This document shows positions 2,627-17,893 of a stretch of 20,933 bases of DNA, piece by piece. The position numbers and the translations under genes are program-made. The notes under the pieces are model-generated. The model had not been told where the DNA came from and ran no database searches. It worked only from the letters and a program-made list of their open reading frames with translations. The number at the start of each line of letters is the position of its first letter. The stretch's first letter is position 1. Location: the sequence record NC_006556.1; one strand, given 5' to 3'.

Positions 2627-2684
2627 GAAGAAAAAGGAGGAGAAAAAAGAGGAAGTTGTCAAGGGGGCGATAGGGGTCTTTTAG
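2619..2684 (+). CDS. Possible 21-aa micro-protein MPKKKKEEKKEEVVKGAIGVF
   Basis: ATG overlaps the end of the upstream gene and follows GAGGT (SD-like, 2612-2616). It could instead be just the complement of the minus-strand gene's terminator. Confidence 0.3.
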   Translation: MPKKKKEEKKEEVVKGAIGVF

Positions 2685-3631
2685 TGGGCGGCTAAGAGGA
2701 TAAGTAGGGCAACGCTCAGCGGTAGTCCCACGAAATAGTAGAGTTTTTTGTTCAGTAGGGTGAATTTTGCGATTACGGCGTAGATATTTAGCGGGTGTGG
2801 GTACATCAACGCGGCGGCTGGCATCATATACAGCATTACCGCGGGCACAGAGACTTGGTCGTGGACGGCTGAGGCAAACATGGTGGCCATGGCTTCCACG
2901 TCTCCCGCCTCACNCCCAACGGNCATGGCGAATAGGGCGCGGATTATGAAGGCGGTAAGGAGGTCNGGGACAGAGGCCAAGAAGGTAGAGGTGATGCCTA
3001 GGGTTTGTTCCGCTAGGTGGATTTGATAGAGGGAGTCGGTTAGGAAGTAGGACGATATGGNCATGCTTATGGTGTTGAATAGCGTNGTGACTATGACGGA
3101 CTTAGGCGGAATCATGCCGGCCTCTGTCCTATATGTCAGNACGATTATAGTGGGCAACACCAAATAGCCTATCGCTATGTAGGCCCCAGCTATGAGGTGT
3201 AACGGCAACTGGAATCCCGCAGATATTAGATATGTCAGTAGGTTTACGCTTAGGGCCGCAACGGACCACAGTATTAGGTAGTGGACCCCCTTCCATATGT
3301 AGTCTGAGCCTATTATGTCTCTGCGCGTAAATGCCGTGACTATTATGCTGTCAACTATCGTAGAGGCTATGGTGTCTATCCAAGCGGCCAGAATATGTCC
3401 GTCCGCCATGAGCTTGATGGCCATTATGGCTTGGGGCAAAGCTATGAGCGCAGAGACCACGAGTACGTTGAACCAAATCGTGACGCGGTATAGGCTCAGA
3501 GTTATCTCTGTGGCGTAGGCCGTCGTGACCATTATGGCAATCCAAATCGCTATATTCAGATAGGGGTTGTTCACAAAGAACATGGCTATCGTGAGCCCCG
3601 CCACAACCGCGTTCAGTATTTTCAAGTCCAT
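2681..3631 (-). CDS. CaCA-superfamily (Na+/Ca2+ exchanger-like) multi-pass membrane protein with degenerate motifs
   Basis: About 10 hydrophobic segments and two alpha-repeats: ALIALPQ...DTIASTIVD and FLASVPD...ATMFASAVHD, matching GTSLPE...GNxxGSNxxN. Contains 6 ambiguous bases. Confidence 0.7.
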   Translation of the reverse strand: MDLKILNAVVAGLTIAMFFVNNPYLNIAIWIAIMVTTAYATEITLSLYRVTIWFNVLVVSALIALPQAIMAIKLMADGHILAAWIDTIASTIVDSIIVTAFTRRDIIGSDYIWKGVHYLILWSVAALSVNLLTYLISAGFQLPLHLIAGAYIAIGYLVLPTIIXLTYRTEAGMIPPKSVIVXTLFNTISMXISSYFLTDSLYQIHLAEQTLGITSTFLASVXDLLTAFIIRALFAMXVGXEAGDVEAMATMFASAVHDQVSVPAVMLYMMPAAALMYPHPLNIYAVIAKFTLLNKKLYYFVGLPLSVALLILLAAH

Positions 3632-5709: not shown

Positions 5710-6321
5710 TTACGATATTTGGATTGTGTAGGTTCCGGTCTTATTGGTGTAGAGTGCCAAGCCCCAAGATATGCCGGCTATGCTTTTCGCAGATATCAAC
5801 ACGTTAGGCGCCACGTTGACGTATAGCGCGGTGTAGTTCCCATAGGTGATTTTGCCCAGCGGCAACGACATTTTCAGCGGCTTTACGTAGACCGTAAGGG
5901 ACGTCGTGTTGACTAGGTAGTTGGTCATGTTGATAGTGGTCGGCATGTTGGTCGTTAGGTAGGTCACAGCGAATAGAGGTATCACGGTGTTGTTCACAGC
6001 ATATCCAGCATAATAGAATGGCGTATTCACCGATTCATAGGGGATATAGGCCACGACGCCAAAATACGTGCCGGTGTCACTTACGGTCACAGTTATGGAG
6101 TTGCCGCTAAAGTTTCCGTCCACTACGACCACGGCCGCAGTTGTGTTGACGGGGTCCGGCCATAATATGGTGTAAGGTGTGGTGGTGGTTCCAGGACCTA
6201 CAATTACGGGCGCCCCGCTAGGCTTTCCGTAGTAGGTATACAACACGTAGATAGCGGCCAACACCAGTAACGCAACCACTAACACAACAACGCCCTTATG
6301 CTGGCTATGTGTGTAAGCCAT
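5710..6321 (-). CDS. Membrane-anchored beta-rich glycoprotein (putative envelope or adhesion protein)
   Basis: N-terminal TM helix, Pro/Thr linker, 7 N-x-S/T sequons; C-terminal GTYTIQIS parallels GRYAIQFS (15291 gene) and GTYTLSG (16363 gene). Confidence 0.75.
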   Translation of the reverse strand: MAYTHSQHKGVVVLVVALLVLAAIYVLYTYYGKPSGAPVIVGPGTTTTPYTILWPDPVNTTAAVVVVDGNFSGNSITVTVSDTGTYFGVVAYIPYESVNTPFYYAGYAVNNTVIPLFAVTYLTTNMPTTINMTNYLVNTTSLTVYVKPLKMSLPLGKITYGNYTALYVNVAPNVLISAKSIAGISWGLALYTNKTGTYTIQIS

Positions 6322-6364: not shown

Positions 6365-7222
6365 ATGGACTTGAGGACTATATACACGGCGTCTGTATTG
6401 GCCGCGGCTATAGTTACGGCTTTGGTCGGTTTCGTCGTGACTGAGAGTTTGTTGGCCCCCATATTGATATTCCTGACGGTGTTGGCGATATTTGACTACT
6501 GGGGCTATGAGGCCGCCAAGGTGGTGGCGCCCATGACTATGTTCCTATACACTCTGGCGTTCTTTGGCGCGCTATCGGGCGTCCAGCTTATCATAATAGC
6601 CGCGGTCATAATAAGCGCCTTGGCGCTTAAAGAAAAGCCGAAATTGGCCGGTCCTTGGCACGCCACTCTGGCGTATCCCCTCAGATTGGCCGCGTTGGCC
6701 CCCCTAGTGTTGTTGTTGGGGCCCCTCTATTTGATATACGACGCGGTTAGGCGTGGCGGGATAATATATAAGGCCGCGGCCGTGTTGGGGGCAATCGGCA
6801 TGGGCCTATTCATGTTTGGGAGGCCCTTAAGCCTATGGGTAGACCCCCATGTGATGTCATTTGGCTGGCTGGCCCAGATTCTCCCCCCAGAGGCCAATCC
6901 GATATACTGGGTAGGCGCGATTGGGTGGGAGGAATTGATATCTAGGGCGATTGGCCCTCTGGGAAACGCGTGGTGGGCCATAATGCACCTCCCCTCTAGG
7001 CTGGCCGCATTACCCGTATTGCCGGCTATAGGTATTGTCCTATTGATAAATATAGGCGGGCGTTGGCTGTGGGAGACCTATAAGGAGGGCGGCCTAATAG
7101 GGTCAATTATAGGCCATGCCGTATACAACGCCATGGTGTCGGCTTTCGCTTTGGGGATACAGTGGTGGCCTACGCTAATAATAATATCTATAATACTATA
7201 TGCCACTTTCAGAAAACCATAA
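6365..7222 (+). CDS. CPBP-family (Abi / type II CAAX) intramembrane glutamic protease
   Basis: Multi-pass protein with E189-E190-x3-R194, W204-x3-H208 and H251-x3-N255 (YKEGGLIGSIIGHAVYN). Confidence 0.85.
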   Translation: MDLRTIYTASVLAAAIVTALVGFVVTESLLAPILIFLTVLAIFDYWGYEAAKVVAPMTMFLYTLAFFGALSGVQLIIIAAVIISALALKEKPKLAGPWHATLAYPLRLAALAPLVLLLGPLYLIYDAVRRGGIIYKAAAVLGAIGMGLFMFGRPLSLWVDPHVMSFGWLAQILPPEANPIYWVGAIGWEELISRAIGPLGNAWWAIMHLPSRLAALPVLPAIGIVLLINIGGRWLWETYKEGGLIGSIIGHAVYNAMVSAFALGIQWWPTLIIISIILYATFRKP

Positions 7223-7245: not shown

Positions 7246-7647
7246 ATGGCGTATAGGGTCGTCTTGGCGGCCTTGGGGGTGTTGTTAGTGGCCGCGCTAT
7301 ATCCGGTGATAGAGGGTGCCGTCAACATGCAGACGGTCACCGGCGTATATGTAGGCAACTTTACGGTATTCGGCGGCCAAGTCTATCCGGTTACGGGCTG
7401 GGGTAGGGTGTACAACGTGGCCGGTCAGACGGTAATACAGTACAACGGCATGGCGTTGGTGGCCAACGGGACGGTGATATTCGGCCATTTGGCCCAACCG
7501 CGTCAGTATACCGGCTATGTAAAGGGTCCTGCGGTGATAGCTGGCGGGATACAGATTATCACCGGTCAGCACATCAAGACGGGCGGTTATGTCTACCTCT
7601 ATCCGGGCGCAGAGGCCTACGTAGTGGACGCTTTAGTCTGGCCGTAA
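7246..7647 (+). CDS. Exported or anchored beta-rich protein
   Basis: Hydrophobic N-terminus followed by G/V/Y/T-rich strands; SD-like GGAGGT at 7229-7234. Confidence 0.75.
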   Translation: MAYRVVLAALGVLLVAALYPVIEGAVNMQTVTGVYVGNFTVFGGQVYPVTGWGRVYNVAGQTVIQYNGMALVANGTVIFGHLAQPRQYTGYVKGPAVIAGGIQIITGQHIKTGGYVYLYPGAEAYVVDALVWP

Positions 7648-7729: not shown

Positions 7730-8116
7730 ATGAGGTGGTTATTGATTTTGGCGTTGGCGGCGGTATTGCTGGCGGTGTGGGCATATAACGTGTCCCACCC
7801 GCCACAGCCGAAAGTAGTGGTCGTAGGCCCAAGCACCAATACGGCCACACAGACGTCCCCCCCTCAACAACAACAACCGCAGTCCCAGCCGGTTATGGCG
7901 TGTCAAGGCACGCTAATCCAGTCGGGCCCCATTAGGGCGTGTAACGTGGTGTCGTATTACGGCAACATGATTGTACTACAATCGCCGGGCTGGATAACCG
8001 GCCAATTCGCCATTTCGGCCATATCTGGCCAGTGTGTGTTCAAGACGGTTGACGGCGTGCTTAGTATAGCTGGGGCTGGGTGTCAGGTTACAATTTTATA
8101 TAACGGGACTAGTTAG
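7730..8116 (+). CDS. Membrane-anchored protein with a P/Q/T-rich linker and a four-Cys beta domain
   Basis: Signal-anchor; VVVVGPSTNTAT resembles PVIVGPGTTTT of the 5710 gene; promoter TTATATATCCG at 7701-7711. Confidence 0.75.
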   Translation: MRWLLILALAAVLLAVWAYNVSHPPQPKVVVVGPSTNTATQTSPPQQQQPQSQPVMACQGTLIQSGPIRACNVVSYYGNMIVLQSPGWITGQFAISAISGQCVFKTVDGVLSIAGAGCQVTILYNGTS

Positions 8117-8358
8117 TGAATATGGTCTGGGAACTAATGAAGGGGTCCAGTAAGCCGACATATTGCGTAATTACGCCCTCCCCTACTGGGGATTTCAACG
8201 TGGCATGCGGCGACCAAATTAAGGCTAATGAATTGCTGAATATGGATAAGGCGTGTCTAGTGGAAATCCACCCAGACGGGCGTACTTTTGTTCAGTGTGA
8301 TAAAGGTCCGGCTGTATTATCGCGTATTGTGGACCTATCCAAATGGCTGAAGCGCTAA
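8116..8358 (+). CDS. Small protein with an internal 30-aa Cys-hairpin repeat
   Basis: TAGTG coupling; C-x5-P-x-G-x3-V-x-C occurs twice (residues 17-31 and 47-61). Confidence 0.7.
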   Translation: MNMVWELMKGSSKPTYCVITPSPTGDFNVACGDQIKANELLNMDKACLVEIHPDGRTFVQCDKGPAVLSRIVDLSKWLKR

Positions 8359-8825
8359 AGAAGTTACTCATAATTTTTTACCTAATAATCTTGGGTTTTT
8401 CTTGGTTACAACTACCTTGGTTTTTCGGCATTACGTCCGTTGGGGGTTTGGTGTTGACCCCCTCAAGCTATCCCTATATCCCTCCCCTTTCGCTAATCGT
8501 GACCGTCCCCACGAATACATGTGAGGGGTGGTCTGTCTATTTTGTCAACGGTACGTGGCTGGGCCTCTTTGAGATACATGTACCGGTAGTCCACTATTTC
8601 AGCGGGAGATATGAGATATTCAACATGAGGGCCTCTTTTGGTTCCAGCGTCCTAGACAATATAAAGCACTATATAGAGGCGTTGATATGGCCGGAAATGG
8701 CGGCTGTCCCGTATAACCACTCATGCGCGGCTAGGGTCATTTTCATTATACCCAGTCCTATAGTGTTAATCTCCTTTGCGGCGTTGGGTTACCACATATA
8801 CTACCGCTTTAGGCGCGTTTGGTAA
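8343..8825 (+). CDS. Divergent S26 signal peptidase (SipW/Sec11 type, Ser-His dyad)
   Basis: N-terminal TM; VLTPSSYP~VxSGSMxP (S41); PLSLIV~GDLIV; EGWSVYF~xGDIIVF; PVVHY~PIVHR (H84); AARVIFIIP~IGKVxxxIP; C-terminal TM. The GDN box is missing. Confidence 0.55.
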   Translation: MAEALKKLLIIFYLIILGFSWLQLPWFFGITSVGGLVLTPSSYPYIPPLSLIVTVPTNTCEGWSVYFVNGTWLGLFEIHVPVVHYFSGRYEIFNMRASFGSSVLDNIKHYIEALIWPEMAAVPYNHSCAARVIFIIPSPIVLISFAALGYHIYYRFRRVW

Positions 8826-8827
8826 CC

Positions 8828-8868
8828 TTTATATACGTGTGATATCTGACGTATATGGTGGTGATAAC
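8828..8868 (+). promoter_or_regulatory. Promoter with GTGATATC box
   Basis: TTTATATA at 8828-8835, GTGATATC at 8839-8846, GTGATAAC at 8861-8868; same layout as 18628-18646. Confidence 0.6.
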
Positions 8869-9631
8869 TAGGGGGTCGGCGAGTTACGTGAAAATAGGCC
8901 CCTACTTCATTAAGGTCTATGTGAAACGCGGGAAGCTGGATTCCCCATTACCGGTGGTGGGGATTTCTGGGTGTACGGAATATGGGTTCTACGCCACTAT
9001 AGACATGGACGGAAGGAGGCTGGCTAGGCGTTTTAGGCGCCATGAGCTTATCAACTACTACCGCATGTACGTGAGGGTCTCTGAGGAAGGTAAGGTTTGG
9101 ATTAATGAGCACGCCATAATCGGGCCGTTTAAAACAAAAAGCCAGGCGGTAAAGATAATGCGGGAGGCGAAAGACGACCCCAAACACCTTAGGACGTTTG
9201 TCCACTACGGCTGTCCTCATGCCGTGATACGGCTCACGCGTTTACCTAATGAGGTAGATATCATTAGGATAATAAATACAGAACTCCCTATGGGTAGGTT
9301 TATTGCGAAATACTTAAATATACAGCCGTTCAATATCCTCATGGCGGAACAATTTAGGCCCATGTATCCGGGCGTTCAGGTGGGTAGTTATCCCGATACA
9401 GTTCAAGGCTCACCTGCGGCTGAGAGGGCTGAGGAAGTCTATAAGGTGAAATACGCGGTTGGCATATGCCAAGCCCTCAAGGAGTACGACCCCCAGGCCT
9501 TCCAGGAGTACTTTGGCGGGGACATGCAGAAGTGTGTTAGGGCGGCCGGTTCCTTTGCCGACCTTAACTTTGACACGTGGAAGATTAAGTGGGGTAGGAA
9601 CCTAGGCGCCCAGATATCGGCTTTCGCATAA
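8855..9631 (+). CDS. Soluble 258-aa protein with a basic N-half; candidate nucleocapsid or structural protein
   Basis: Own promoter and terminator; RRLARRFRRH patch; heads the block of putative virion genes. The structural role is inference only. Confidence 0.6.
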   Translation: MVVITRGSASYVKIGPYFIKVYVKRGKLDSPLPVVGISGCTEYGFYATIDMDGRRLARRFRRHELINYYRMYVRVSEEGKVWINEHAIIGPFKTKSQAVKIMREAKDDPKHLRTFVHYGCPHAVIRLTRLPNEVDIIRIINTELPMGRFIAKYLNIQPFNILMAEQFRPMYPGVQVGSYPDTVQGSPAAERAEEVYKVKYAVGICQALKEYDPQAFQEYFGGDMQKCVRAAGSFADLNFDTWKIKWGRNLGAQISAFA

Positions 9632-10457: not shown

Positions 10458-11183
10458 ATGATAATACCGTTTAGCCTAGGGGCGTTGGCCGGATTGTTGA
10501 TAATAGCGTTCTTTGCCAGGCGCCAAATCATATTCGCCTTGGTGGCAATATTTATATCGGGCGCTTTGGCTGGGGTTGCCGGCTCAATCTACTATTCGTT
10601 TATGGCTATGTATTTGGCGGCGTTGACTATATACATTATCGTCCAAGAGGAAGGCCGTATTGTTGAGCGGGCGTTGGCGTTGTATCTAGGCACTTTGGCC
10701 ATTTGGCTGTCGGATAATAGCGCGGCGGCCTCAGCACTATCCCTAATAGCGTATCAATTAGTGATGCCGCTATTCCAGGCCATAAACAACGTCTTTGTCC
10801 AGGCGGGCATAGCGTTCTCTGGCCTACTGGCTTGGTCTATAGTGGCTAGGCGGATTATGACTGTGGCTGAGGAATTTCCGCTAATAGGGGCCGGCTATGT
10901 GTATCTGGCTTATTCCATATTGGCGCCTATGGTCATGACGTTGCCCGACTATCTGAAACTGGCCTTGGGGCTGGCCCTAATTGGGCCGTTCAGCCAAGCC
11001 GTCAAGGGTGACCTAGAGGCGCTTGAGGAAATAGCGCCCTTCCTCTGGCTATTGCCGATACCGATAGATACGGTCAAGGTGATAGGCGCGGCTGTGGCCA
11101 TAATAGAGTTGGCGCTAGGCGTGCTGTCCAAGAAGCGGCTATTGGCGTCCGCCATGTGGGCTGAGGCGATATTGCTGGCATGA
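10458..11183 (+). CDS. Multi-pass membrane protein (241 aa)
   Basis: Ala/Leu/Ile-rich hydrophobic segments throughout; ATGA overlap with the next gene. Confidence 0.8.
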   Translation: MIIPFSLGALAGLLIIAFFARRQIIFALVAIFISGALAGVAGSIYYSFMAMYLAALTIYIIVQEEGRIVERALALYLGTLAIWLSDNSAAASALSLIAYQLVMPLFQAINNVFVQAGIAFSGLLAWSIVARRIMTVAEEFPLIGAGYVYLAYSILAPMVMTLPDYLKLALGLALIGPFSQAVKGDLEALEEIAPFLWLLPIPIDTVKVIGAAVAIIELALGVLSKKRLLASAMWAEAILLA

Positions 11184-12052
11184 GCTATATACCGGACTTA
11201 TCGCGTTTTGGCGTCCTAGGCATATTGGCGCTTTTTGTTCCGTCATTTGTATACGGCGCTATGACTATGTACCTAGGCGTGGCTAACGGCTGGCTATTCC
11301 TAATCCAGTTGCTGGCCCTAATCGCGATTATTGCCCACTACAAAAATTTCAGTGAGGCCGTACTATTCGCCTTGGGGGCGGCTTTCGGCGGCTTGACCAC
11401 CCAATTTATAGGCATAAAGTGGCTAGTNGTAGACGCCCTATCGCCGGCACTATACGTTCTACTGTCTATGGTCAACACTATAGAAAAGGCGTTTTACTTG
11501 GGTATCGCCTTGGGCATGGTGGGCTTTCTACTGGCCCCCATAGTCTTTATCGTGACGACATTAGTATCGCTGGCCGCCATGCTTATACTAAGGCTCAGCG
11601 GCCTACTTTATGAGGCCGTGAATCTAGTGGTCCACGGCCTTAGGCATGTCCCAGAGGGGTATAGGGCGTTGTTGGCCCCTTGGATAGGGTCCGTCATGAT
11701 TGCCCTACCGATAGCTGTGTTGGGCGGCATGTTCCTTTCGGCGTTGGCTTTAGTTGTTGGGGCGGTAGTTGGGGGCGCTTTGGTGGGCATGTTGGGCACG
11801 GCCTCTGAGGTGTCTGCGTTGGCCGGATTCATAATACCGACGTTGCTGACAAGACCCCAAACCAAGACAATCGCAGAGGTGTTGATGGACATGGGCGCCC
11901 TATTCTTGGGGGTGATGTTGGTGGGCTATGGGGTAGTCCAGGTGTTGTGGACGGCGGGATATGCGGCCATATCTACACGCCACGCCAGTAGGGGGTTCTA
12001 CCTTATCGGACTTTCTGCAATAACTGCGGTGTTGATAGGTGCCGCTCACTAA
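11180..12052 (+). CDS. Multi-pass membrane protein (290 aa)
   Basis: About 9 hydrophobic Gly/Ala/Leu-rich segments. Confidence 0.8.
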   Translation: MSYIPDLSRFGVLGILALFVPSFVYGAMTMYLGVANGWLFLIQLLALIAIIAHYKNFSEAVLFALGAAFGGLTTQFIGIKWLXVDALSPALYVLLSMVNTIEKAFYLGIALGMVGFLLAPIVFIVTTLVSLAAMLILRLSGLLYEAVNLVVHGLRHVPEGYRALLAPWIGSVMIALPIAVLGGMFLSALALVVGAVVGGALVGMLGTASEVSALAGFIIPTLLTRPQTKTIAEVLMDMGALFLGVMLVGYGVVQVLWTAGYAAISTRHASRGFYLIGLSAITAVLIGAAH

Positions 12053-12171: not shown

Positions 12172-12796
12172 ATTTATAAACACGGGGATTCTCTTACCTA
12201 TGGACTCACTAGAAATGGACGCGGAATACGAATGGGACCTAGACGAAATAAACTCCCTAGAGTTCTGGCTGGACGCGATTTCATTTGTGTTGCCGCATAT
12301 AGAGGACCTACCGTTGGAACAACAAATAGAGTACGTGAGGACTTGGGGCCAGACGGTTGCCAAGGCGCGTGCCATGAGAGTGGGGGAGGGGGGGTACAAT
12401 AAGGAGGCTGTGGACTTCATGGCCGATATGGTGGTTGCCGGCAAATTCGGCGTGGTGGGGCCAAACATCACTAGGGAGTTGTACGAATACGTGAGGACTT
12501 TCGGGGTGGACCAATTCCTATTTGAGGCGCGTGATGTGTTAAAGGCGGCGTACCCCCAGATTAGGAGGGCGTCTCAGTACTACCTATCAATACCGGCGGA
12601 CGCCTATATCGATATAGTGTCTTATGCCGCCCAAGGCAAATACGACGACATAAGGAGGTACGCGGAAATGTTGATAGAGGAAGGGCGGTCACCTAGGTCG
12701 GTGTATTTCAACCTCTACTACATAGCCCGGGCCACAGGCGATAGGGAGATATACGGGATAGCTAGGGAGATAGAGAGGCTTTCGCGGAAACGTTAA
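12164..12796 (+). CDS. Helical protein with a very acidic N-terminus (210 aa)
   Basis: MDSLEMDAEYEWDLDEINSLEFWLD; TATA-like TTTAGATA at 12137-12144 lies inside repeat B. Confidence 0.8.
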   Translation: MITFINTGILLPMDSLEMDAEYEWDLDEINSLEFWLDAISFVLPHIEDLPLEQQIEYVRTWGQTVAKARAMRVGEGGYNKEAVDFMADMVVAGKFGVVGPNITRELYEYVRTFGVDQFLFEARDVLKAAYPQIRRASQYYLSIPADAYIDIVSYAAQGKYDDIRRYAEMLIEEGRSPRSVYFNLYYIARATGDREIYGIAREIERLSRKR

Positions 12797-12823
12797 TATA
12801 TAAACCAATTCAATCATTTTTTC

Positions 12824-13351
12824 ATGGCTAGATATCCGGTACCTATGGTTCTGGCGGCCGCGATAGTCATAGGTGTAGTGTACGTAGTGGTCAACGCCAA
12901 CATCACTACGCCTTCCGTTTCGCCTTTCCTAAAGCAATATAACACAACTGCGGTTGGCGGCACTTTTAAGGGCGTGGTCTACGCCAACACTACGGGCAAA
13001 ATCTACTACGGCATGTTGCCCATTTATGGGGTCGTATACAGCACAACTACTACCGCGCTCAACTACACCATGGGCGGGAAGACTTTCACGGTTTGTTACG
13101 CTAACGGCTATGCCACGCCTTTGGTCAACATGACTGCCGGCACATGCACCAGTACGGTGGCCCTCTTGGCCGGCATGAAGGTTGTGAATGGGACGGTTAC
13201 CCTAATGCTCAACAACGGCACCACTATAGCTGTGCCTCTCAACTACATAGCCAACGGGCCGGTGGACATAGCCGTTGGCCAGTACGACACTACCGGCCAA
13301 AAGGCGTACGTAATTTACATGCCCTCTGGCGGGTCCGTCGTAGTTAAATAA
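12824..13351 (+). CDS. Exported beta-rich glycoprotein, RxPIPL-signal family
   Basis: MARYPVPMVLAAAIVIG|VVYVVV; 7 sequons; two Cys pairs; TATA at 12793-12804. Confidence 0.8.
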   Translation: MARYPVPMVLAAAIVIGVVYVVVNANITTPSVSPFLKQYNTTAVGGTFKGVVYANTTGKIYYGMLPIYGVVYSTTTTALNYTMGGKTFTVCYANGYATPLVNMTAGTCTSTVALLAGMKVVNGTVTLMLNNGTTIAVPLNYIANGPVDIAVGQYDTTGQKAYVIYMPSGGSVVVK

Positions 13352-13373
13352 AAAACCCCAAATATTTTTCCTC

Positions 13374-14186
13374 ATGGAGTGGAAGAGATTTCCGATTCCG
13401 CTAATTCTGGCGGCTGTATTAGTAGGCGCAGTGTTGATAATAATCACGATAAACGTGACCGTACCCAAGGCGTTCTATGCCTCAAGCGGCAACGCCACGA
13501 TAACCCTATATGCTGGGTCGCCCTATATGTACTACGACACTTGGCCGGGCACGGTAACCGTGAATGTCGTAAGCGGTACGGCGGCATTTACTACTACTAT
13601 ATACTACGGCATTATGTTGCCGTCGTACAACGCCTATACGCCACTCATAGCTATCCTAACAAATGCGCCTAAGGCGTTCTACACGACCTCTACGTGGTCT
13701 ATATCCACGCCAGTGGGTTCCCGCGCCATAAAGTTGTGGCTTGAGCAGGATTCGAGTGGCGGGTGGTGGTTGGTCGTGGAAGACACAAACCAAGCGGTTT
13801 ATCCCGTGTGTGCCGTGTATAAAATGAACATGACCTCACTGTCCTTAAGCGGTGCCACGTATTATTTGTTCTACCCAATACCCACTACCGCCACGTCCAC
13901 TACCGCGCCAATTCCGTCAGAATGTGGCGGTGACTACACTTTGGTCCAATCGTGGAGTTTCAGCGGTGGAAATATAGTGGGTACAAACGTCTATAGCGGG
14001 ACCACCCGTGTGGCCAGTAGGGGTCTGACCGCAACTACTGCGTCTTCTGTATCCTACACGACCCAATATCTACAATATCCGGGCATAAATAGGACGGACC
14101 TCACTGTGTTTTACATAGAAACGGGATATGCCGTGGCGTTCAATCAGGTTAACAACCCAATTACCGTCACGATAACCCACAGCTAA
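13374..14186 (+). CDS. Exported beta-rich glycoprotein, RxPIPL-signal family
   Basis: MEWKRFPIPLILAAVLVGA|VLIIITINV; T/Y/S-rich; ends in a beta strand. Confidence 0.8.
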   Translation: MEWKRFPIPLILAAVLVGAVLIIITINVTVPKAFYASSGNATITLYAGSPYMYYDTWPGTVTVNVVSGTAAFTTTIYYGIMLPSYNAYTPLIAILTNAPKAFYTTSTWSISTPVGSRAIKLWLEQDSSGGWWLVVEDTNQAVYPVCAVYKMNMTSLSLSGATYYLFYPIPTTATSTTAPIPSECGGDYTLVQSWSFSGGNIVGTNVYSGTTRVASRGLTATTASSVSYTTQYLQYPGINRTDLTVFYIETGYAVAFNQVNNPITVTITHS

Positions 14187-14200
14187 TCCCCCTTTTTCCT
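14187..14200 (+). terminator. C-tract/T-tract terminator
   Basis: TAA-T-CCCCC-TTTTT-CCT. Confidence 0.6.
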
Positions 14201-14235
14201 CTAAGCTCAGTTGTTTTTAAGGGATATAGTAGGGC

Positions 14236-14538
14236 ATGAACACCAAACCCAAACTCGTGGAAAAAGAATTCGCAATAATCTACGACGGTAAGTACCTAAT
14301 ATTCGCGGGAATCAAGCCGGAACTTGGGATAAACATGTTGGCCCTATTCGGGCCGGACACTAGGTGTGATATCTGTGGGAGGAAGATAGGGTACGGCCCC
14401 TATATGGTCGTGGCTGAGAAATACGGCGAAAAAGGCCATGTGGTTTGTGGGAAGTGCATGAACTCTCCCGACTTTAAGCCGGTAGTGGAAAAAATGAGAC
14501 GTAGGGCTTTAGGTAGTCGGCGTCAAAACAATATTTGA
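14236..14538 (+). CDS. Zinc-finger protein (CxxC...CxxC)
   Basis: CDIC and CGKC with a basic C-terminal helix; 30-nt convergent overlap with the next gene. Confidence 0.75.
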   Translation: MNTKPKLVEKEFAIIYDGKYLIFAGIKPELGINMLALFGPDTRCDICGRKIGYGPYMVVAEKYGEKGHVVCGKCMNSPDFKPVVEKMRRRALGSRRQNNI

Positions 14539-15261
14539 GGCGGCGTTTGTCATAAAGAAATAGCCCATTATTATTTTGAAACTACCGAAATCGTAGAGGT
14601 TGTATCCACCTATCGTGGACCCAGGCGATATGCTGAGAGTGCCGGTGTAGATACGGGTGGGCCAGCCGGTTGACCAACTTCCAAGTGAGCATGAATACCA
14701 ATTGCCCACGACTACAATCCAGTTTGCTGAGCCGATTAGGCTATTTTCTATACTGCATATCGTAGACTCTTTGCCGCTCACGTCACTCTGTGAGGCCAGC
14801 GTGAATAGGTACTCACTTCCCGCAGTGGCGGCAACCTTCCACACAAACGCGGCTGAGTAGGCTGAGCCGGTGGCTGAGTTGTAGACTTGGAATACCGTGA
14901 GCACTAGGCCGCTATTGTTGTAGACGTAGAACTTGGCCGTGCCAAGCTGATATCCCGTCCCGCTAGGTATCTGGCCTATAGAGGCCGCCAGGGCGTGATA
15001 TTTTGTATAGCCGGAATATGAGGAACTATCGCCTATGTGGTCTATATAGGTTATACTGGTGACGTTGGCGCTCACTACTGTCAACTTCCCGCCTATGACG
15101 AAATCGGTAGTTACCGCGGGCGCAACTACCGTATAGGTGGTTCCGTTAAATGTGACGTATTTGGGGTTGTACGAATATACATATTTGATACTGACCACGA
15201 TAACTATCGTAACTGCGGCTGTGAATACGGCGGCCAGTATTAGGGGGATTGGAATCCGCAT
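14509..15261 (-). CDS. Exported beta-rich protein, RxPIPL-signal family (reverse orientation)
   Basis: MRIPIPLILAAVFTAA|VTIVIVVS; minus-strand stop followed by CCCT...TTTTTT. Confidence 0.8.
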   Translation of the reverse strand: MRIPIPLILAAVFTAAVTIVIVVSIKYVYSYNPKYVTFNGTTYTVVAPAVTTDFVIGGKLTVVSANVTSITYIDHIGDSSSYSGYTKYHALAASIGQIPSGTGYQLGTAKFYVYNNSGLVLTVFQVYNSATGSAYSAAFVWKVAATAGSEYLFTLASQSDVSGKESTICSIENSLIGSANWIVVVGNWYSCSLGSWSTGWPTRIYTGTLSISPGSTIGGYNLYDFGSFKIIMGYFFMTNAASNIVLTPTT

Positions 15262-15290
15262 AAATATATTTTAGGCTATTATATTTTGCC
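15262..15290. promoter_or_regulatory. 29-bp divergent promoter region
   Basis: AT-rich gap between the starts at 15261 (-) and 15291 (+), with a TATA-like element near each end. Confidence 0.45.
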
Positions 15291-16010
15291 ATGACTCCTA
15301 GAAATAAACGGTTGTTGGCCGCGGCGTTGGCCATAATAGCGATACTGGCCATAGCGGCCTTTCTACTAATGGGCGCCTCAAAGGGCGGTGGGATACCCAC
15401 ACAGCAACCCACCACCACTACTACCTCTCCTCCCCCAGCATATACCGACGTGTATCCTACCGTGTCCCCCCCTAATAGTGTGAGCGGTATCTATATTGAT
15501 AGTGGGAGGTTTACGTGTGATGGCACTACATGTACTCTGACCGTTTCGGGCTATGGGACCTTTGTATCAATCGTGGCCTATAGCGCTAGGCCTCTGTCTT
15601 CCGCTAACGCCACGGTTGGTCCGGCCTACATAACCGTTGGGAACTACCGCATATGGCTATTCGGCTATATAGCCACCTCTCTGGCCAACTATTCGGATAC
15701 GGCGTTTAGCGTGTACGTCTTTCCGGCTTTGAAATGCGGCTATATCTACTACCCCAAAGTGGGCGCCAGCATAGCGTTGGCCGTATTTAATGACACCAAC
15801 TACTGGGTCGTAGTCCCCACGAATAGTCCCGGCACATGCGCCCTTCCGGGCCACATAATAACCGTTGACAATACAAACGCGGTGGCGTTTGTAGACGGGA
15901 CCTCTACTACGATATCGATAGGCACGCTTCCCAAATCGGTCAGCGGCGTGGCCTATGCCTATATGGTGTCTATATCGCAAAGCGGGAGGTACGCGATTCA
16001 GTTCTCATAA
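15291..16010 (+). CDS. Membrane-anchored beta-rich glycoprotein, paralog of the 5710 and 16363 genes
   Basis: Signal-anchor, PTQQPTTTTTSPPP linker, CDGTTCTLTVSG motif, C-terminal GRYAIQFS. Confidence 0.8.
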   Translation: MTPRNKRLLAAALAIIAILAIAAFLLMGASKGGGIPTQQPTTTTTSPPPAYTDVYPTVSPPNSVSGIYIDSGRFTCDGTTCTLTVSGYGTFVSIVAYSARPLSSANATVGPAYITVGNYRIWLFGYIATSLANYSDTAFSVYVFPALKCGYIYYPKVGASIALAVFNDTNYWVVVPTNSPGTCALPGHIITVDNTNAVAFVDGTSTTISIGTLPKSVSGVAYAYMVSISQSGRYAIQFS

Positions 16011-16040
16011 TTAATATAAATACCTAACATGTTTTTCTAC

Positions 16041-16346
16041 ATGCTCAGACATTTGGATTTGGCGTTAGACATGATTGCTGTATTTGGGTTGGCGCTTATC
16101 CTACTGTCGTACATAATGCCGGTGTCCCATATGAATGACATAATCGCGGGCACAATAGCCGTAGTGGCGATAGATTTGGTGGTGTCTTTGGGCATGCCTA
16201 GTGACGCAGTTGAGGACGCGTTTGCCCTTATAGCCATGTTGGCCGCGGTGTTTGGTTTCTATCCGCCCCTAATGTATATGATTGCGTTGTTGATAAAGGC
16301 GTACGATATTCATGAGGACGCCAAAGGCCTAAAATATATAATCTAA
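16041..16346 (+). CDS. Small multi-pass membrane protein
   Basis: Three to four hydrophobic segments; start moved from 16029 to 16041 by TATA spacing (16011-16020). Confidence 0.7.
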   Translation: MLRHLDLALDMIAVFGLALILLSYIMPVSHMNDIIAGTIAVVAIDLVVSLGMPSDAVEDAFALIAMLAAVFGFYPPLMYMIALLIKAYDIHEDAKGLKYII

Positions 16347-16362
16347 CCTCACGTTTTTTCCC

Positions 16363-17073
16363 ATGTTTAGGTGGTTCCCGGCGTTAATACTGGCTTTTGT
16401 ATTCACCGTAGGCATCACGATAATCATAGTGGCCAATTTGACGGCCACAACTGGCGCGGCCCCCTCAACGCCAACTGGGATTTCGGTGTACCCAACGTCC
16501 AGCGTCACGAATCCCGCCAGCGCGGTCTGGATAACCGATAAGGCGTCGTGTAGTGGGACTACGTGTACCCTATCGATATCCGGCCCAACGGGCGGGGTCA
16601 TGACGATAGTCTACGACACGACCAAACCGACCACCAACGCAACCCTATCTGCGGCATGTGTGCCCGTGCCGGGACTCAACACCACTATATACCTATTCGG
16701 AATCGCGTCTACGGGCCTATACAACCAAACCCTCACGGCCTCAAGCGGAAGCATAACCGTGGAACTACACAGCACCTACGGCTATCTTTACTACAACGTA
16801 AGCAACACCATAGTTGGCGTGCCTCTATCGGTGACTTTGGCCTCTACGACATATGTGGCGGTCCCAACCGCCCCAGCGTCTTTGCCTAGTGGAAGCGCCA
16901 AGTACTGGGTCTTGGTGAATAATGACAACGGCATGTACTACATATATTCGGGCGGGATTTTGGCGGCCTACGGCTATGTGGCCAATTGTACTATACCCAC
17001 AATACCCAGCGGCGTCATGATGGGCTTCCGCGTATACATGCCGGGAGTAGGCACATATACCCTATCTGGATAA
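16363..17073 (+). CDS. Exported beta-rich glycoprotein: RxPIPL-type signal fused to the GTTCTL domain
   Basis: MFRWFPALILAFVFTVG|ITIIIV; CSGTTCTLSISG; C-terminal GTYTLSG. Confidence 0.8.
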   Translation: MFRWFPALILAFVFTVGITIIIVANLTATTGAAPSTPTGISVYPTSSVTNPASAVWITDKASCSGTTCTLSISGPTGGVMTIVYDTTKPTTNATLSAACVPVPGLNTTIYLFGIASTGLYNQTLTASSGSITVELHSTYGYLYYNVSNTIVGVPLSVTLASTTYVAVPTAPASLPSGSAKYWVLVNNDNGMYYIYSGGILAAYGYVANCTIPTIPSGVMMGFRVYMPGVGTYTLSG

Positions 17074-17074
17074 T

Positions 17075-17893
17075 ATGGCCATGAGGTGGCCAATCCCGCT
17101 TATAGTGGCCTTGGCTTTGGTGTCAGCTGTGACGTTGACTATAACCTACACCTATCAATTCTACGCGCCAGATATCGTGGGAAGCGCGGTTCCCTATACG
17201 GCCTCTGGCGCGTCTAACGGCTATTTGGCTGGGGGCATGGGATACATATTCATATATGTCAACGGGACGTATCCCAATCCGTACCTCATGACGTGGAATC
17301 CCGGCCCCAATCCGGCCATATCTACGTCGGGCCCCAGCTATCCATTTCCGGCCGTGATATACATGCCGAATCCGGTCAACGCCACAATCCAAGTCCCCAA
17401 CTCTAGGTGTTCTTCCGGTTACGACTACATATTGACCTACTACTATCCGGCTTACGGCATAGTCGTAGTGAAATACGCGCTATGTGGCCAATTCGATTAC
17501 GCGTTTGTCGGCTATCCTATCCAAGGCCACCCGGGTTACTACACCACTCTGACCGGCGTTGATCCATGTAACCAAGCGTGGTCGTATATTGTTGCCGCGC
17601 CAGACCCATTTGGGTACTATCCGGACGTATTACACAGCTATAGCGTGTCGTCTTCCGGCATAACGTTCACTTTCGATTTGGTTCAGCAACTCACTACCGG
17701 CGTCCAGTGTTATAGGGGCGATAAGACCCTCACGTATTCGTTCAGCGCGCCCAGCATATACGGCCTAAAGACTTGGCCGTTTGTATACAGCTATGGCGGG
17801 ATTCAATTCGCCCTATATCAACCCATATGGTTCTACGTGGGCGCAACGGGGTCCTATTCGGTTAATGCCACCTATATACCCTCTTGGTCCTAA
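17075..17893 (+). CDS. Exported beta-rich Tyr/Pro-rich protein, RxPIPL-signal family
   Basis: MAMRWPIPLIVALALVSA|VTLTITYTYQFY; four Cys. Confidence 0.8.
   Translation: MAMRWPIPLIVALALVSAVTLTITYTYQFYAPDIVGSAVPYTASGASNGYLAGGMGYIFIYVNGTYPNPYLMTWNPGPNPAISTSGPSYPFPAVIYMPNPVNATIQVPNSRCSSGYDYILTYYYPAYGIVVVKYALCGQFDYAFVGYPIQGHPGYYTTLTGVDPCNQAWSYIVAAPDPFGYYPDVLHSYSVSSSGITFTFDLVQQLTTGVQCYRGDKTLTYSFSAPSIYGLKTWPFVYSYGGIQFALYQPIWFYVGATGSYSVNATYIPSWS

Follow-up and report, generated by a model that had tools for sequence, protein, structure and literature searches.

Two archaeal fibers are close precedents for the mechanism that we propose here. The Pyrobaculum bundling-pilus protein AbpA is cut by a generic signal peptidase at AMA|TL, presents a hydrophobic N-terminal donor strand with a glycosylation sequon, and is chaperone-free. 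In the threads of Sulfolobus, formed by Saci_0406, cleavage is at LVA|DV, the subunit has a beta tail at its N-terminus, and the heavily glycosylated fiber measures 40 Angstrom in width; a Vulcanisaeta homologue of the thread protein is predicted to have the same fold. We analyzed a stretch of 20,933 nucleotides (nt), called the window below, that makes up the whole genome of Thermoproteus tenax spherical virus 1 (TTSV1, Globuloviridae; AY722806 / NC_006556). Positions 12824 to 17893, which are 100% identical to TTSV1, hold five open reading frames (ORFs) that GenBank labels "hypothetical protein" in every case and whose products, gp23, gp24, gp26, gp30L (an extended form of gp30), and gp31, start with one shared N-terminal module, which we call the leader. 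We consider it likely that these five are exported glycoproteins of the virion surface that share an N-terminal signal specific to their virus family.

TTSV1 has a hyperthermophilic archaeon as its host, its virion is spherical and enveloped, and its infection is non-lytic. For about 98% of globulovirus proteins, databases hold no similar sequence. Two of three structural proteins are common to TTSV1 and its relative PSV. Virions of another globulovirus, TSPV1, carry glycosylated filaments with a width of 3 nm and lengths of up to 500 nm, while protrusions but no filaments have been described on the virions of PSV and PSV2. Filaments are not known to have been reported on TTSV1. Among the virion proteins of TTSV1, a 10-kDa protein is reportedly the only one identified, and bands of 20 and 35 kDa are said to be unassigned.

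Results

The module consists of a basic start, the motif P-I-P-L-I-x-A-A-V, a small-residue hinge, and a stretch rich in Val, Ile, and Thr (V/I/T) with the periodicity of a beta-strand. In gp24 (13374-14186, plus strand; 270 aa, 29.2 kDa), the leader MEWKRFPIPLILAAVLVGA (13374-13430) is followed by VLIIITINVTV. In gp26 (14509-15261, minus strand; 250 aa, 26.6 kDa), a member of what we call family A, MRIPIPLILAAVFTAA (15214-15261) precedes VTIVIVVSIKY, and in gp31 (17075-17893, plus strand; 272 aa, 29.9 kDa), MAMRWPIPLIVALALVSA (17075-17128) precedes VTLTITYTYQF. The other two proteins have divergent leaders, which are MARYPVPMVLAAAIVIG (12824-12874) before VVYVVVNANIT in gp23 (12824-13351, plus strand; 175 aa, 18.2 kDa) and MFRWFPALILAFVFTVG (16363-16413) before ITIIIVANLTA in gp30L (16363-17073, plus strand; 236 aa, 24.4 kDa). 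A preliminary description of the window had quoted these N-termini, and the ORF translations confirmed them letter for letter. It had also noted the -3/-1 rule of signal peptidase sites with Val or Ile at +1. All five TTSV1 leaders have Ala or Gly at position 13 (counting from the first Pro of the motif), Val or Thr at -3, and Val or Ile at +1, and this strict pattern at a fixed position was present in 1% of 104 true transmembrane (TM) 22-mers from globulovirus multipass proteins that served as controls. The leader had further been called fixed in length, which holds within TTSV1 but not in the related viruses, where the hinge has indels of 1-2 residues.

The likeness among the five proteins is limited to the first ~30 residues, where gp24 is 58% identical to gp26 over 24 aa and 62% identical to gp31 over 21 aa. 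When 35 residues were removed, the mature parts gave no cross-match among the five by BLAST or hhalign. The exception with detectable ectodomain relatives is gp30L, which matched gp27 (31% identity over ~200 aa; E = 7e-11) and, weakly, gp10. We trained a leader hidden Markov model (HMM) only on leaders of PSV, PSV2, TSPV1, and metagenomic sequences, with none from TTSV1, and ran it on the 246 six-frame segments of the window. The three top-scoring segments were gp26 (31.1 bits), gp31 (20.7 bits), and gp24 (15.1 bits). The model recognized gp23 (6.5 bits, domain score) and gp30L (1.8 bits) weakly, and the leaders of these two proteins are divergent versions of the module.

The start M-R-(K/R)-I-P-I-P-L-I-x-A-A-V also heads VP3, ORF270, and ORF282 of PSV; VP3, ORF23, and ORF28 of PSV2; and GP13, GP23, and GP24 of TSPV1. 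Thus, PSV, PSV2, and TSPV1 have three module genes each, and TTSV1 has five. A scan of JGI metagenomes with the back-translated motif led to hot-spring contigs related to TSPV1 and PSV2. Two of the longer contigs, L094 and L095, have three module genes apiece, and at least three leader genes were found in every genome or long contig checked. The contig L095 (JAWAKX010000004.1, 18.6 kb, near genome length) is a PSV2-like globulovirus sequence that had been binned within an archaeal metagenome-assembled genome (MAG) labeled "Nitrososphaerota archaeon." Likewise, the family A protein P0013 sits in a MAG bin labeled "Pyrobaculum sp.," a viral sequence binned with a cellular genome.

Among 50,697 phage and archaeal-virus records, the leader motif occurred in globuloviruses only, and IMG/VR returned TTSV1 itself, three chance hits, and nothing else. 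A search of 185,579 species genomes (one per species) with back-translated IPIPLIxAAV gave 41 hits, none of them in Thermoproteales; those of the hits that were translated lay inside unrelated bacterial proteins and looked like chance matches. "Private," the word chosen in the preliminary description, is therefore a fair one for the leader, because the motif was not found outside globuloviruses in the virus records, in IMG/VR, or in Thermoproteales genomes. A leader-only profile run against 5.8 billion proteins gave two short hits, at a database size where a 40-column HMM cannot reach significance. Borrowing of the leader from the host is not supported, with no Thermoproteales match among the 41 genome hits. 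The family-wide signal is real. The shared module is apparently undescribed; no account of it turned up in the literature searched.

Residues 1 to 14 are conserved better than any other part of the proteins. In the GP24 family, they have a mean identity of 92%, and the mature part has 73%; the corresponding values in the ORF23/270 family are 80% and 62%. Residues 15 to 28 evolve at about the rate of the mature domain. In an alignment of the leaders, eight of nine consecutive positions of the first half are conserved, and helical periodicity is absent. The gp24 and gp26 leaders differ in the third base at 6 of 9 identical codons, and their synonymous sites are saturated. This divergence at third codon positions points to long-standing purifying selection on a recognition element rather than to recent gene conversion. 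Chance or low complexity as the source of the likeness among leaders is rejected on the evidence of the independent HMM, the saturated synonymous sites, and the family-wide conservation.

Every one of the 17 distinct leaders has a -3/-1 site with its +1 residue at position 14 to 16. Among control TM segments of these viruses, 66% have such a site when a window of 5 positions is allowed and 20% when the position is fixed. The objection that the -1 residue is not conserved in GP24 orthologues was dropped, as a site two residues further on (V-[AG] followed by [VI]-Y) fits all of them. The second half of the leader has a V/I/T content of 57 to 71% in most leaders versus 27 +/- 12% in 184 true TM 14-mers; in 10 of 14 leaders, this content reaches or exceeds the 98th percentile for true TM segments. 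In 16 of 16 leaders, the hydrophobic moment of the second half is larger at 170 degrees than at 100 degrees, which corresponds to a two-residue periodicity, and in 13 of 14 leaders its beta-moment excess ranks in the 85th to 100th percentile of the TM 14-mer controls. For gp24, the second half is 64% V/I/T, with a beta-moment excess at the 100th percentile of controls. In gp31, TSPV1 GP23, and TSPV1 GP24, the hydropathy of the second half is lower than the usual TM threshold; in gp31, its mean Kyte-Doolittle hydropathy of 0.44 is too polar for half a TM helix. Set against TM controls, the V/I/T content and the periodicity bear out the view of a bipartite leader whose AXA-like hinge is followed by a strand-like half. 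As in donor-strand pilins, an alternating hydrophobic N-terminal stretch stands right after the -3/-1 site, where cleavage is predicted.

The domains behind the leader are extracytoplasmic in character. Charged residues (Lys, Arg, Asp, and Glu) make up 4 to 7% of the ectodomains versus 19 to 31% of cytoplasmic ORFs, N-x-S/T sequons number 1.1 to 4.0 per 100 aa versus 0 to 1.2, and cysteines in the low-charge class come in even numbers (0, 2, or 4). The charged fraction is 5.7% in gp23 (4.0 sequons per 100 aa, 2 Cys), 7.4% in gp24 (2 Cys), and 5.1% in gp31 (4 Cys). Low charge, sequons, and even cysteine counts together make up the profile of exported, glycosylated, disulfide-bonded proteins. 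That the leader marks beta-rich, exported-looking proteins, as had been claimed, agrees with the low charge and the many sequons in all five. Each protein had also been said to end in a beta-strand; the alternating C-terminal patterns in the sequences would fit such a strand. Four further proteins, gp10 (5710-6321, minus strand), gp12 (7246-7647), gp13 (7730-8116), and gp27 (15291-16010), belong to the same low-charge, sequon-rich class (in gp10, 5.4% charged residues and 3.4 sequons per 100 aa) and have ordinary N-terminal anchors. Given their resemblance to the five leader proteins, TTSV1 has at least nine exported-looking proteins.

Two families could be traced through the mature domains. 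Family A, the gp26 family, is present in all four isolates, and a profile search yielded 16 members, every one with an MRIPIPLI leader. The mature part of gp26 is 26% identical to TSPV1 GP23 (E = 4e-14); gp26 is a true homologue of TSPV1 GP23, PSV2 ORF23, and PSV ORF270, and its cysteine pair C169/C191 is conserved in the family. Family B includes gp27 and its orthologues TSPV1 GP6, PSV2 ORF08, and PSV ORF252. The long form of gp27 (plus strand; 239 aa) has an ordinary Leu/Ala-rich N-terminal anchor, a T/P-rich stalk, and a family B ectodomain, whereas gp30L has the leader and V/I/T run, a T/P/S-rich stalk, and a family B ectodomain. The start of gp27 is probably the ATG at 15291 rather than that at 15315, which gives the protein an extra basic n-region, TPRNKR, before the anchor. 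A remote member of family B, gp10 (203 aa), also has an ordinary anchor at its N-terminus; it matched the long gp27 at E = 8e-4 and the family B profile by hhalign at E = 0.0012 over 154 columns, with a probability of just 19%. An all-against-all hhalign comparison of mature domains found only the match of family B with gp10 and that of A with A2, both weak. Outside the module, no similarity of gp23, gp24, or gp31 to VP3 or GP24 could be detected, and BLAST found no VP3 homologue in TTSV1. The term "paralog array," applied earlier to the five genes, is only partly right because most mature domains are not detectably homologous.

The GenBank call for ORF30 (16600-17073) is truncated, and the full ORF runs from the ATG at 16363. 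We take the long form as right because the 39 residues from 41 to 79 of gp30L, which precede the GenBank start at 16600, can already be aligned with gp27 and TSPV1 GP6 and because a TATA-like box lies ~30 nt upstream of the gp30L ATG, as with the other four leader genes. The antisense ORF29 (16329-16601), which overlaps the 5' part of gp30L, is then probably a spurious call. Each of the five leader genes has its own TATA-like A/T-rich box ~20 to 35 nt 5' of its start codon (12794-12804 for gp23, ~20 to 30 nt before its ATG), which suggests that they are transcribed separately, with very short 5' leaders or none.

The module also leads to the virion. VP3 of PSV and of PSV2 is annotated as a virion protein. 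TSPV1 GP24, which has a calculated mass of 33.5 kDa, is reportedly the glycosylated 35-kDa major filament protein. Since VP3 and this reported filament protein carry the same module, the five TTSV1 proteins are probably surface proteins, and the link to the TSPV1 filaments that had been put forward gains support from the leader on GP24. We infer that the TTSV1 proteins are exported and located in the virion. Their sizes are compatible with the reported 20- and 35-kDa TTSV1 bands, through gp23 (18 kDa) and glycosylated gp24 or gp31 (29 to 30 kDa). In seven TSPV1-like contigs (L053, L056, L064, L067, L077, L080, and L083), GP24 orthologues have a mean identity of 73% in the mature part versus 94% for the adjacent GP23. 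The filament gene GP24 is thus evolving much faster than its neighbor, which fits a role in host range.

We then considered the accessory proteins that had been suggested. A viral peptidase had been placed at 8343, where gp15 (8343-8825, plus strand) is encoded. This two-TM protein is conserved in all four isolates, but gp15 and its three orthologues match no peptidase model in Pfam or NCBIfam, and the best PDB match of the gp15 profile, a thioredoxin, was not significant (E = 0.087). Among the listed ORFs of the window, no other signal peptidase-like ORF was found, nor a dedicated enzyme of the SipW type. We conclude that gp15 is a conserved two-TM protein with no peptidase signature and that its membership in the leader system is not supported.

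The multipass membrane protein gp11 (6365-7222, plus strand), described earlier as a CPBP protease, contains the triad EExxxR, H208, and H251xxxN255. Every globulovirus has a conserved gp11, and the triad shows no variation among 12 homologues. At 18 residues, the EE-to-H spacing is shorter than is usual for CPBP proteins. Beyond the CPBP-like triad, the assignment gained no support; neither Pfam, NCBIfam, nor PDB gave a match for gp11, a 12-sequence profile fared no better, and none of nine gp11 homologues scanned against Pfam had a CPBP domain. A phmmer search of 1.84 billion representative proteins with gp11 returned 14 hits, most of which look like globulovirus orthologues by size and identity. 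An AlphaFold2 (AF2) model of gp11 from a single sequence was of low confidence (mean predicted local distance difference test [pLDDT] score, 55.5; predicted template modeling [pTM] score, 0.22) and drew every TM segment as a helix. As gp11 has the sole protease-like signature in the genome, it is a speculative candidate for processing the leader. Recognizable gp11- and gp15-like genes accompany the leader genes in the four isolates and in the PSV-like contig L094. For gp5, a C-P-x-C motif is invariant in four orthologues, but the score as a thioredoxin stayed under the threshold (Thioredoxin_2, E = 0.1 and 13.4 bits versus a cutoff of 27; best PDB profile match, a glutaredoxin at E = 0.76).

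Relatedness of the five proteins to TasA/camelysin (Peptidase_M73) or AbpA likewise found no support. None of them has a Pfam match (E <= 1), an NCBIfam match (E <= 10), or a PDB-profile match, and a family A profile of 16 sequences compared with all PDB chains, TasA and AbpA entries included, hit only an antibody chain at E = 0.84.

Elsewhere in the genome, positions 8855 to 9340 hold a coding stretch that GenBank leaves unannotated. It is homologous to PSV2 ORF26-201 (34% identity; E = 3e-13), TSPV1 GP15 (E = 3e-7), and PSV ORF235, and its reading frame continues without a stop into that of the VP1 homologue gp16 (9341-9631). For the open frame from 8855 to 9631, the choices are a gene missed in annotation, a genuine fusion, and an artifact of sequencing. 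The deposited sequence also has 10 ambiguous bases (N), which give X residues in the gp4, gp8, gp21, and gp34 ORFs (for example, at 2681-3631 on the minus strand and at 11180-12052).

Discussion

The account that we favor, which keeps the core idea of the preliminary description, joins cleavage of the leader to strand complementation. The first part of the leader, one or two basic residues plus P-I-P-L-I-x-A-A-V, would act as a Sec-type signal for targeting and recognition, with the N-terminus left in the cytoplasm. It would be cut off at the hinge, probably by a signal peptidase of the host Sec11 type, which we propose because no viral peptidase was identified. The second part, a V/I/T-rich segment of 10 to 14 residues with two-residue periodicity that follows a small-residue hinge obeying the -3/-1 rule, would thereby be exposed as a hydrophobic strand and buried in the beta-sheet of a neighboring subunit to give strand-complemented oligomers or fibers on the envelope. 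The products may be the long 3-nm filaments in TSPV1 and short protrusions in TTSV1, PSV, and PSV2, and the family B proteins with plain anchors (gp27 and gp10) are candidate membrane bases or partners. A filament subunit that lies at a distance from the envelope has no way to retain a membrane anchor, so the Leu/Ala-rich half of the GP24 leader would have to be removed or buried. In an AF2 model of gp26 built from 16 sequences, only residues 8 to 12 are helical and residues 13 to 35 are unstructured, unlike the TM segments of gp11, all of which were modeled as helices; in a low-confidence model, this is weak evidence. We infer both the cleavage and the strand complementation, and we hold the complete mechanism weakly, as a leading possibility that is nearly tied with retention of the leader as a membrane anchor.

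Several observations weigh against this mechanism. The same gp26 model (mean pLDDT, 45.4; pTM, 0.40) gives no support for an acceptor groove, and Foldseek found no PDB hits for it at E <= 0.001, with a best TM-score of 0.19. The uninterrupted hydrophobic run of 18 to 22 residues has the length of one TM helix, so the presumed cleavage site would sit in the middle of the membrane, and h-regions of that length usually escape signal peptidase. The slot that the leader occupies in gp30L is filled in gp27, gp10, TSPV1 GP6, PSV2 ORF08, and PSV ORF252 by a plain anchor and a G/T/P-rich stalk, which means that the family B domain needs no N-terminal strand. PSV and PSV2 virions are described as having protrusions rather than filaments, and their VP3 must stay attached to the envelope. 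A signal peptide that is removed is not normally the best-conserved part of a protein, and no sequence link joins the five proteins to known donor-strand pilins. Finally, the argument from the filaments depends on the reported role of GP24.

Some of these points suit an uncleaved signal-anchor, which we regard as a strong runner-up though short of probable. The whole hydrophobic segment of 18 to 24 residues would then be one N-in/C-out TM helix kept in the mature protein, and the proteins would be type-II-like envelope spikes or protrusions, with PIPLIxAAV and the hinge as a sorting or packing motif that recruits them to the budding envelope, for example, against the multipass proteins VP2 (gp20) and gp21. 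The best 19-residue Kyte-Doolittle windows of the leaders score 2.15 to 3.03 within runs of 18 to 22 residues, basic residues are confined to the N-terminal side of the module, and plain anchors take the same architectural slot in the family B orthologues. VP3, moreover, is a virion protein of an enveloped virus with surface protrusions, not fibers. A first half that is more conserved than the ectodomain is what one expects of a segment that is kept and used, and small-xxx-small spacings (such as A8...G12 and A9...G13) would suit helix packing. A retained helix sits less easily with the second half, which is an outlier in composition and periodicity among the TM segments of the virus itself, or with the Lys, Arg, Gln, or Asn at positions 19 to 23 of many leaders. 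Conservation of eight of nine consecutive residues is also unlike the one-face pattern of helix packing, and an anchor leaves unexplained how GP24 subunits with the same module, in their reported filament role, come to lie hundreds of nanometers from the envelope.

The cleavage-plus-strand mechanism also has a more ambitious form, in which the surface appendages (TSPV1 filaments and the protrusions of PSV, PSV2, and TTSV1) are all donor-strand polymers of interchangeable, fast-evolving subunits whose private leader is read by gp11 and not by a host peptidase. This form seems to us unlikely.

Assembly in the manner of pilins is quite improbable. By that analogy, a viral intramembrane enzyme, with gp11 as the candidate, would read R/K-x-PIPLI and cut near the cytoplasmic face or in the membrane, and the retained hydrophobic N-terminus would drive assembly. 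Pilins, too, combine a basic start and a conserved hydrophobic N-terminus with a variable beta-rich domain across several paralogues. The restriction of the motif to globuloviruses would suit such a private enzyme, as would the presence of gp11 in every globulovirus with its three motifs invariant in 12 homologues and the co-occurrence of three or more leader genes per genome or long contig with gp11- and gp15-like genes in the four isolates and L094. The leaders themselves speak against it, in that all 17 have Arg or Lys followed by I/V/F/W-P-I-P and lack a [KR]-[GA] motif before the hydrophobic stretch. In addition, gp11 matches no protease model and has a short EE-to-H spacing, no gene for a pilus ATPase or platform was recognized in the virus, and a 3-nm filament is too thin for a helix-core pilus of 33-kDa subunits.

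That the five are instead non-virion proteins exported to remodel the host cell surface (for superinfection exclusion, cell aggregation, or receptor masking) is equally improbable, for although their composition is extracytoplasmic, the infection is chronic and non-lytic, and only the 10-kDa TTSV1 virion protein has reportedly been identified, the module heads the virion proteins PSV VP3 and (reportedly) TSPV1 GP24, and the reported 20- and 35-kDa virion bands fit the sizes of gp23 and of glycosylated gp24 or gp31.

The leader code provides the first family-wide list of candidate surface and host-recognition proteins. One N-terminal code ties together VP3, the reported TSPV1 filament protein, and five "hypothetical" ORFs of TTSV1, with three such genes per genome in the other isolates. 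The leader proteins are candidates for the TTSV1 virion bands that reportedly lack an assignment, and they offer a model of how the exceptionally stable TSPV1 filaments could be built. If the strand complementation of the cleavage-plus-strand mechanism is true, it would extend an assembly principle of cellular pili to an enveloped virus and would be a source of very thermostable, self-assembling fiber modules. If the form with a private leader read by gp11 and donor-strand polymers were true, it would stand as the first donor-strand pilus system of a virus that has a sorting code to itself.

Among known systems, type IV pilins, with their class III signal peptide, resemble the leader proteins in their basic start, their conserved hydrophobic N-terminus of ~20 residues, their divergent beta-rich paralogues, and their role in surface filaments. 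They differ in having a [KR]-[GA] motif, an assembly ATPase and platform, and a width greater than 3 nm, and the leader system has no recognized counterparts of these. The membrane-embedded CPBP/Rce1-type proteases have the same order of motifs as gp11 (EExxxR, H, and HxxxN), but the spacing in gp11 is shorter and gp11 matches no family model. The bacterial TasA operon includes a dedicated peptidase of the SipW type, whereas AbpA does without one, and none was recognized in the TTSV1 window.

Archaeal donor-strand filaments offer another comparison. In AbpA, the Saci_0406 threads, and the cannula protein CanA, a Sec signal with an AXA-type site stands directly before a hydrophobic N-terminal beta-strand, as in the module, where the cleavage is predicted. 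As proposed for the leader proteins, these filaments have N-glycosylated, beta-rich subunits, no dedicated chaperone or usher, and thin, very stable fibers. Donor-strand filaments are known from crenarchaea, with AbpA present in the host order, Thermoproteales. The leader proteins differ from all three in that their h-region is hyperconserved and contains Pro and in that the putative strand is much more hydrophobic and runs on from the h-region without a break, so that the two together could be a TM helix. Unlike the cellular genes, theirs are virus encoded and head several unrelated-looking domains that have no sequence or profile similarity to these subunits. Membership in the TasA/AbpA family is thus not supported, but, by analogy, the leader proteins plausibly work like archaeal donor-strand pili. 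Their nearest likenesses are within the globuloviruses, where VP3 of PSV and PSV2 and GP24, GP13, and GP23 of TSPV1 have the same module, followed by a low-charge, sequon-rich, beta-looking domain and an alternating hydrophobic C-terminal stretch.

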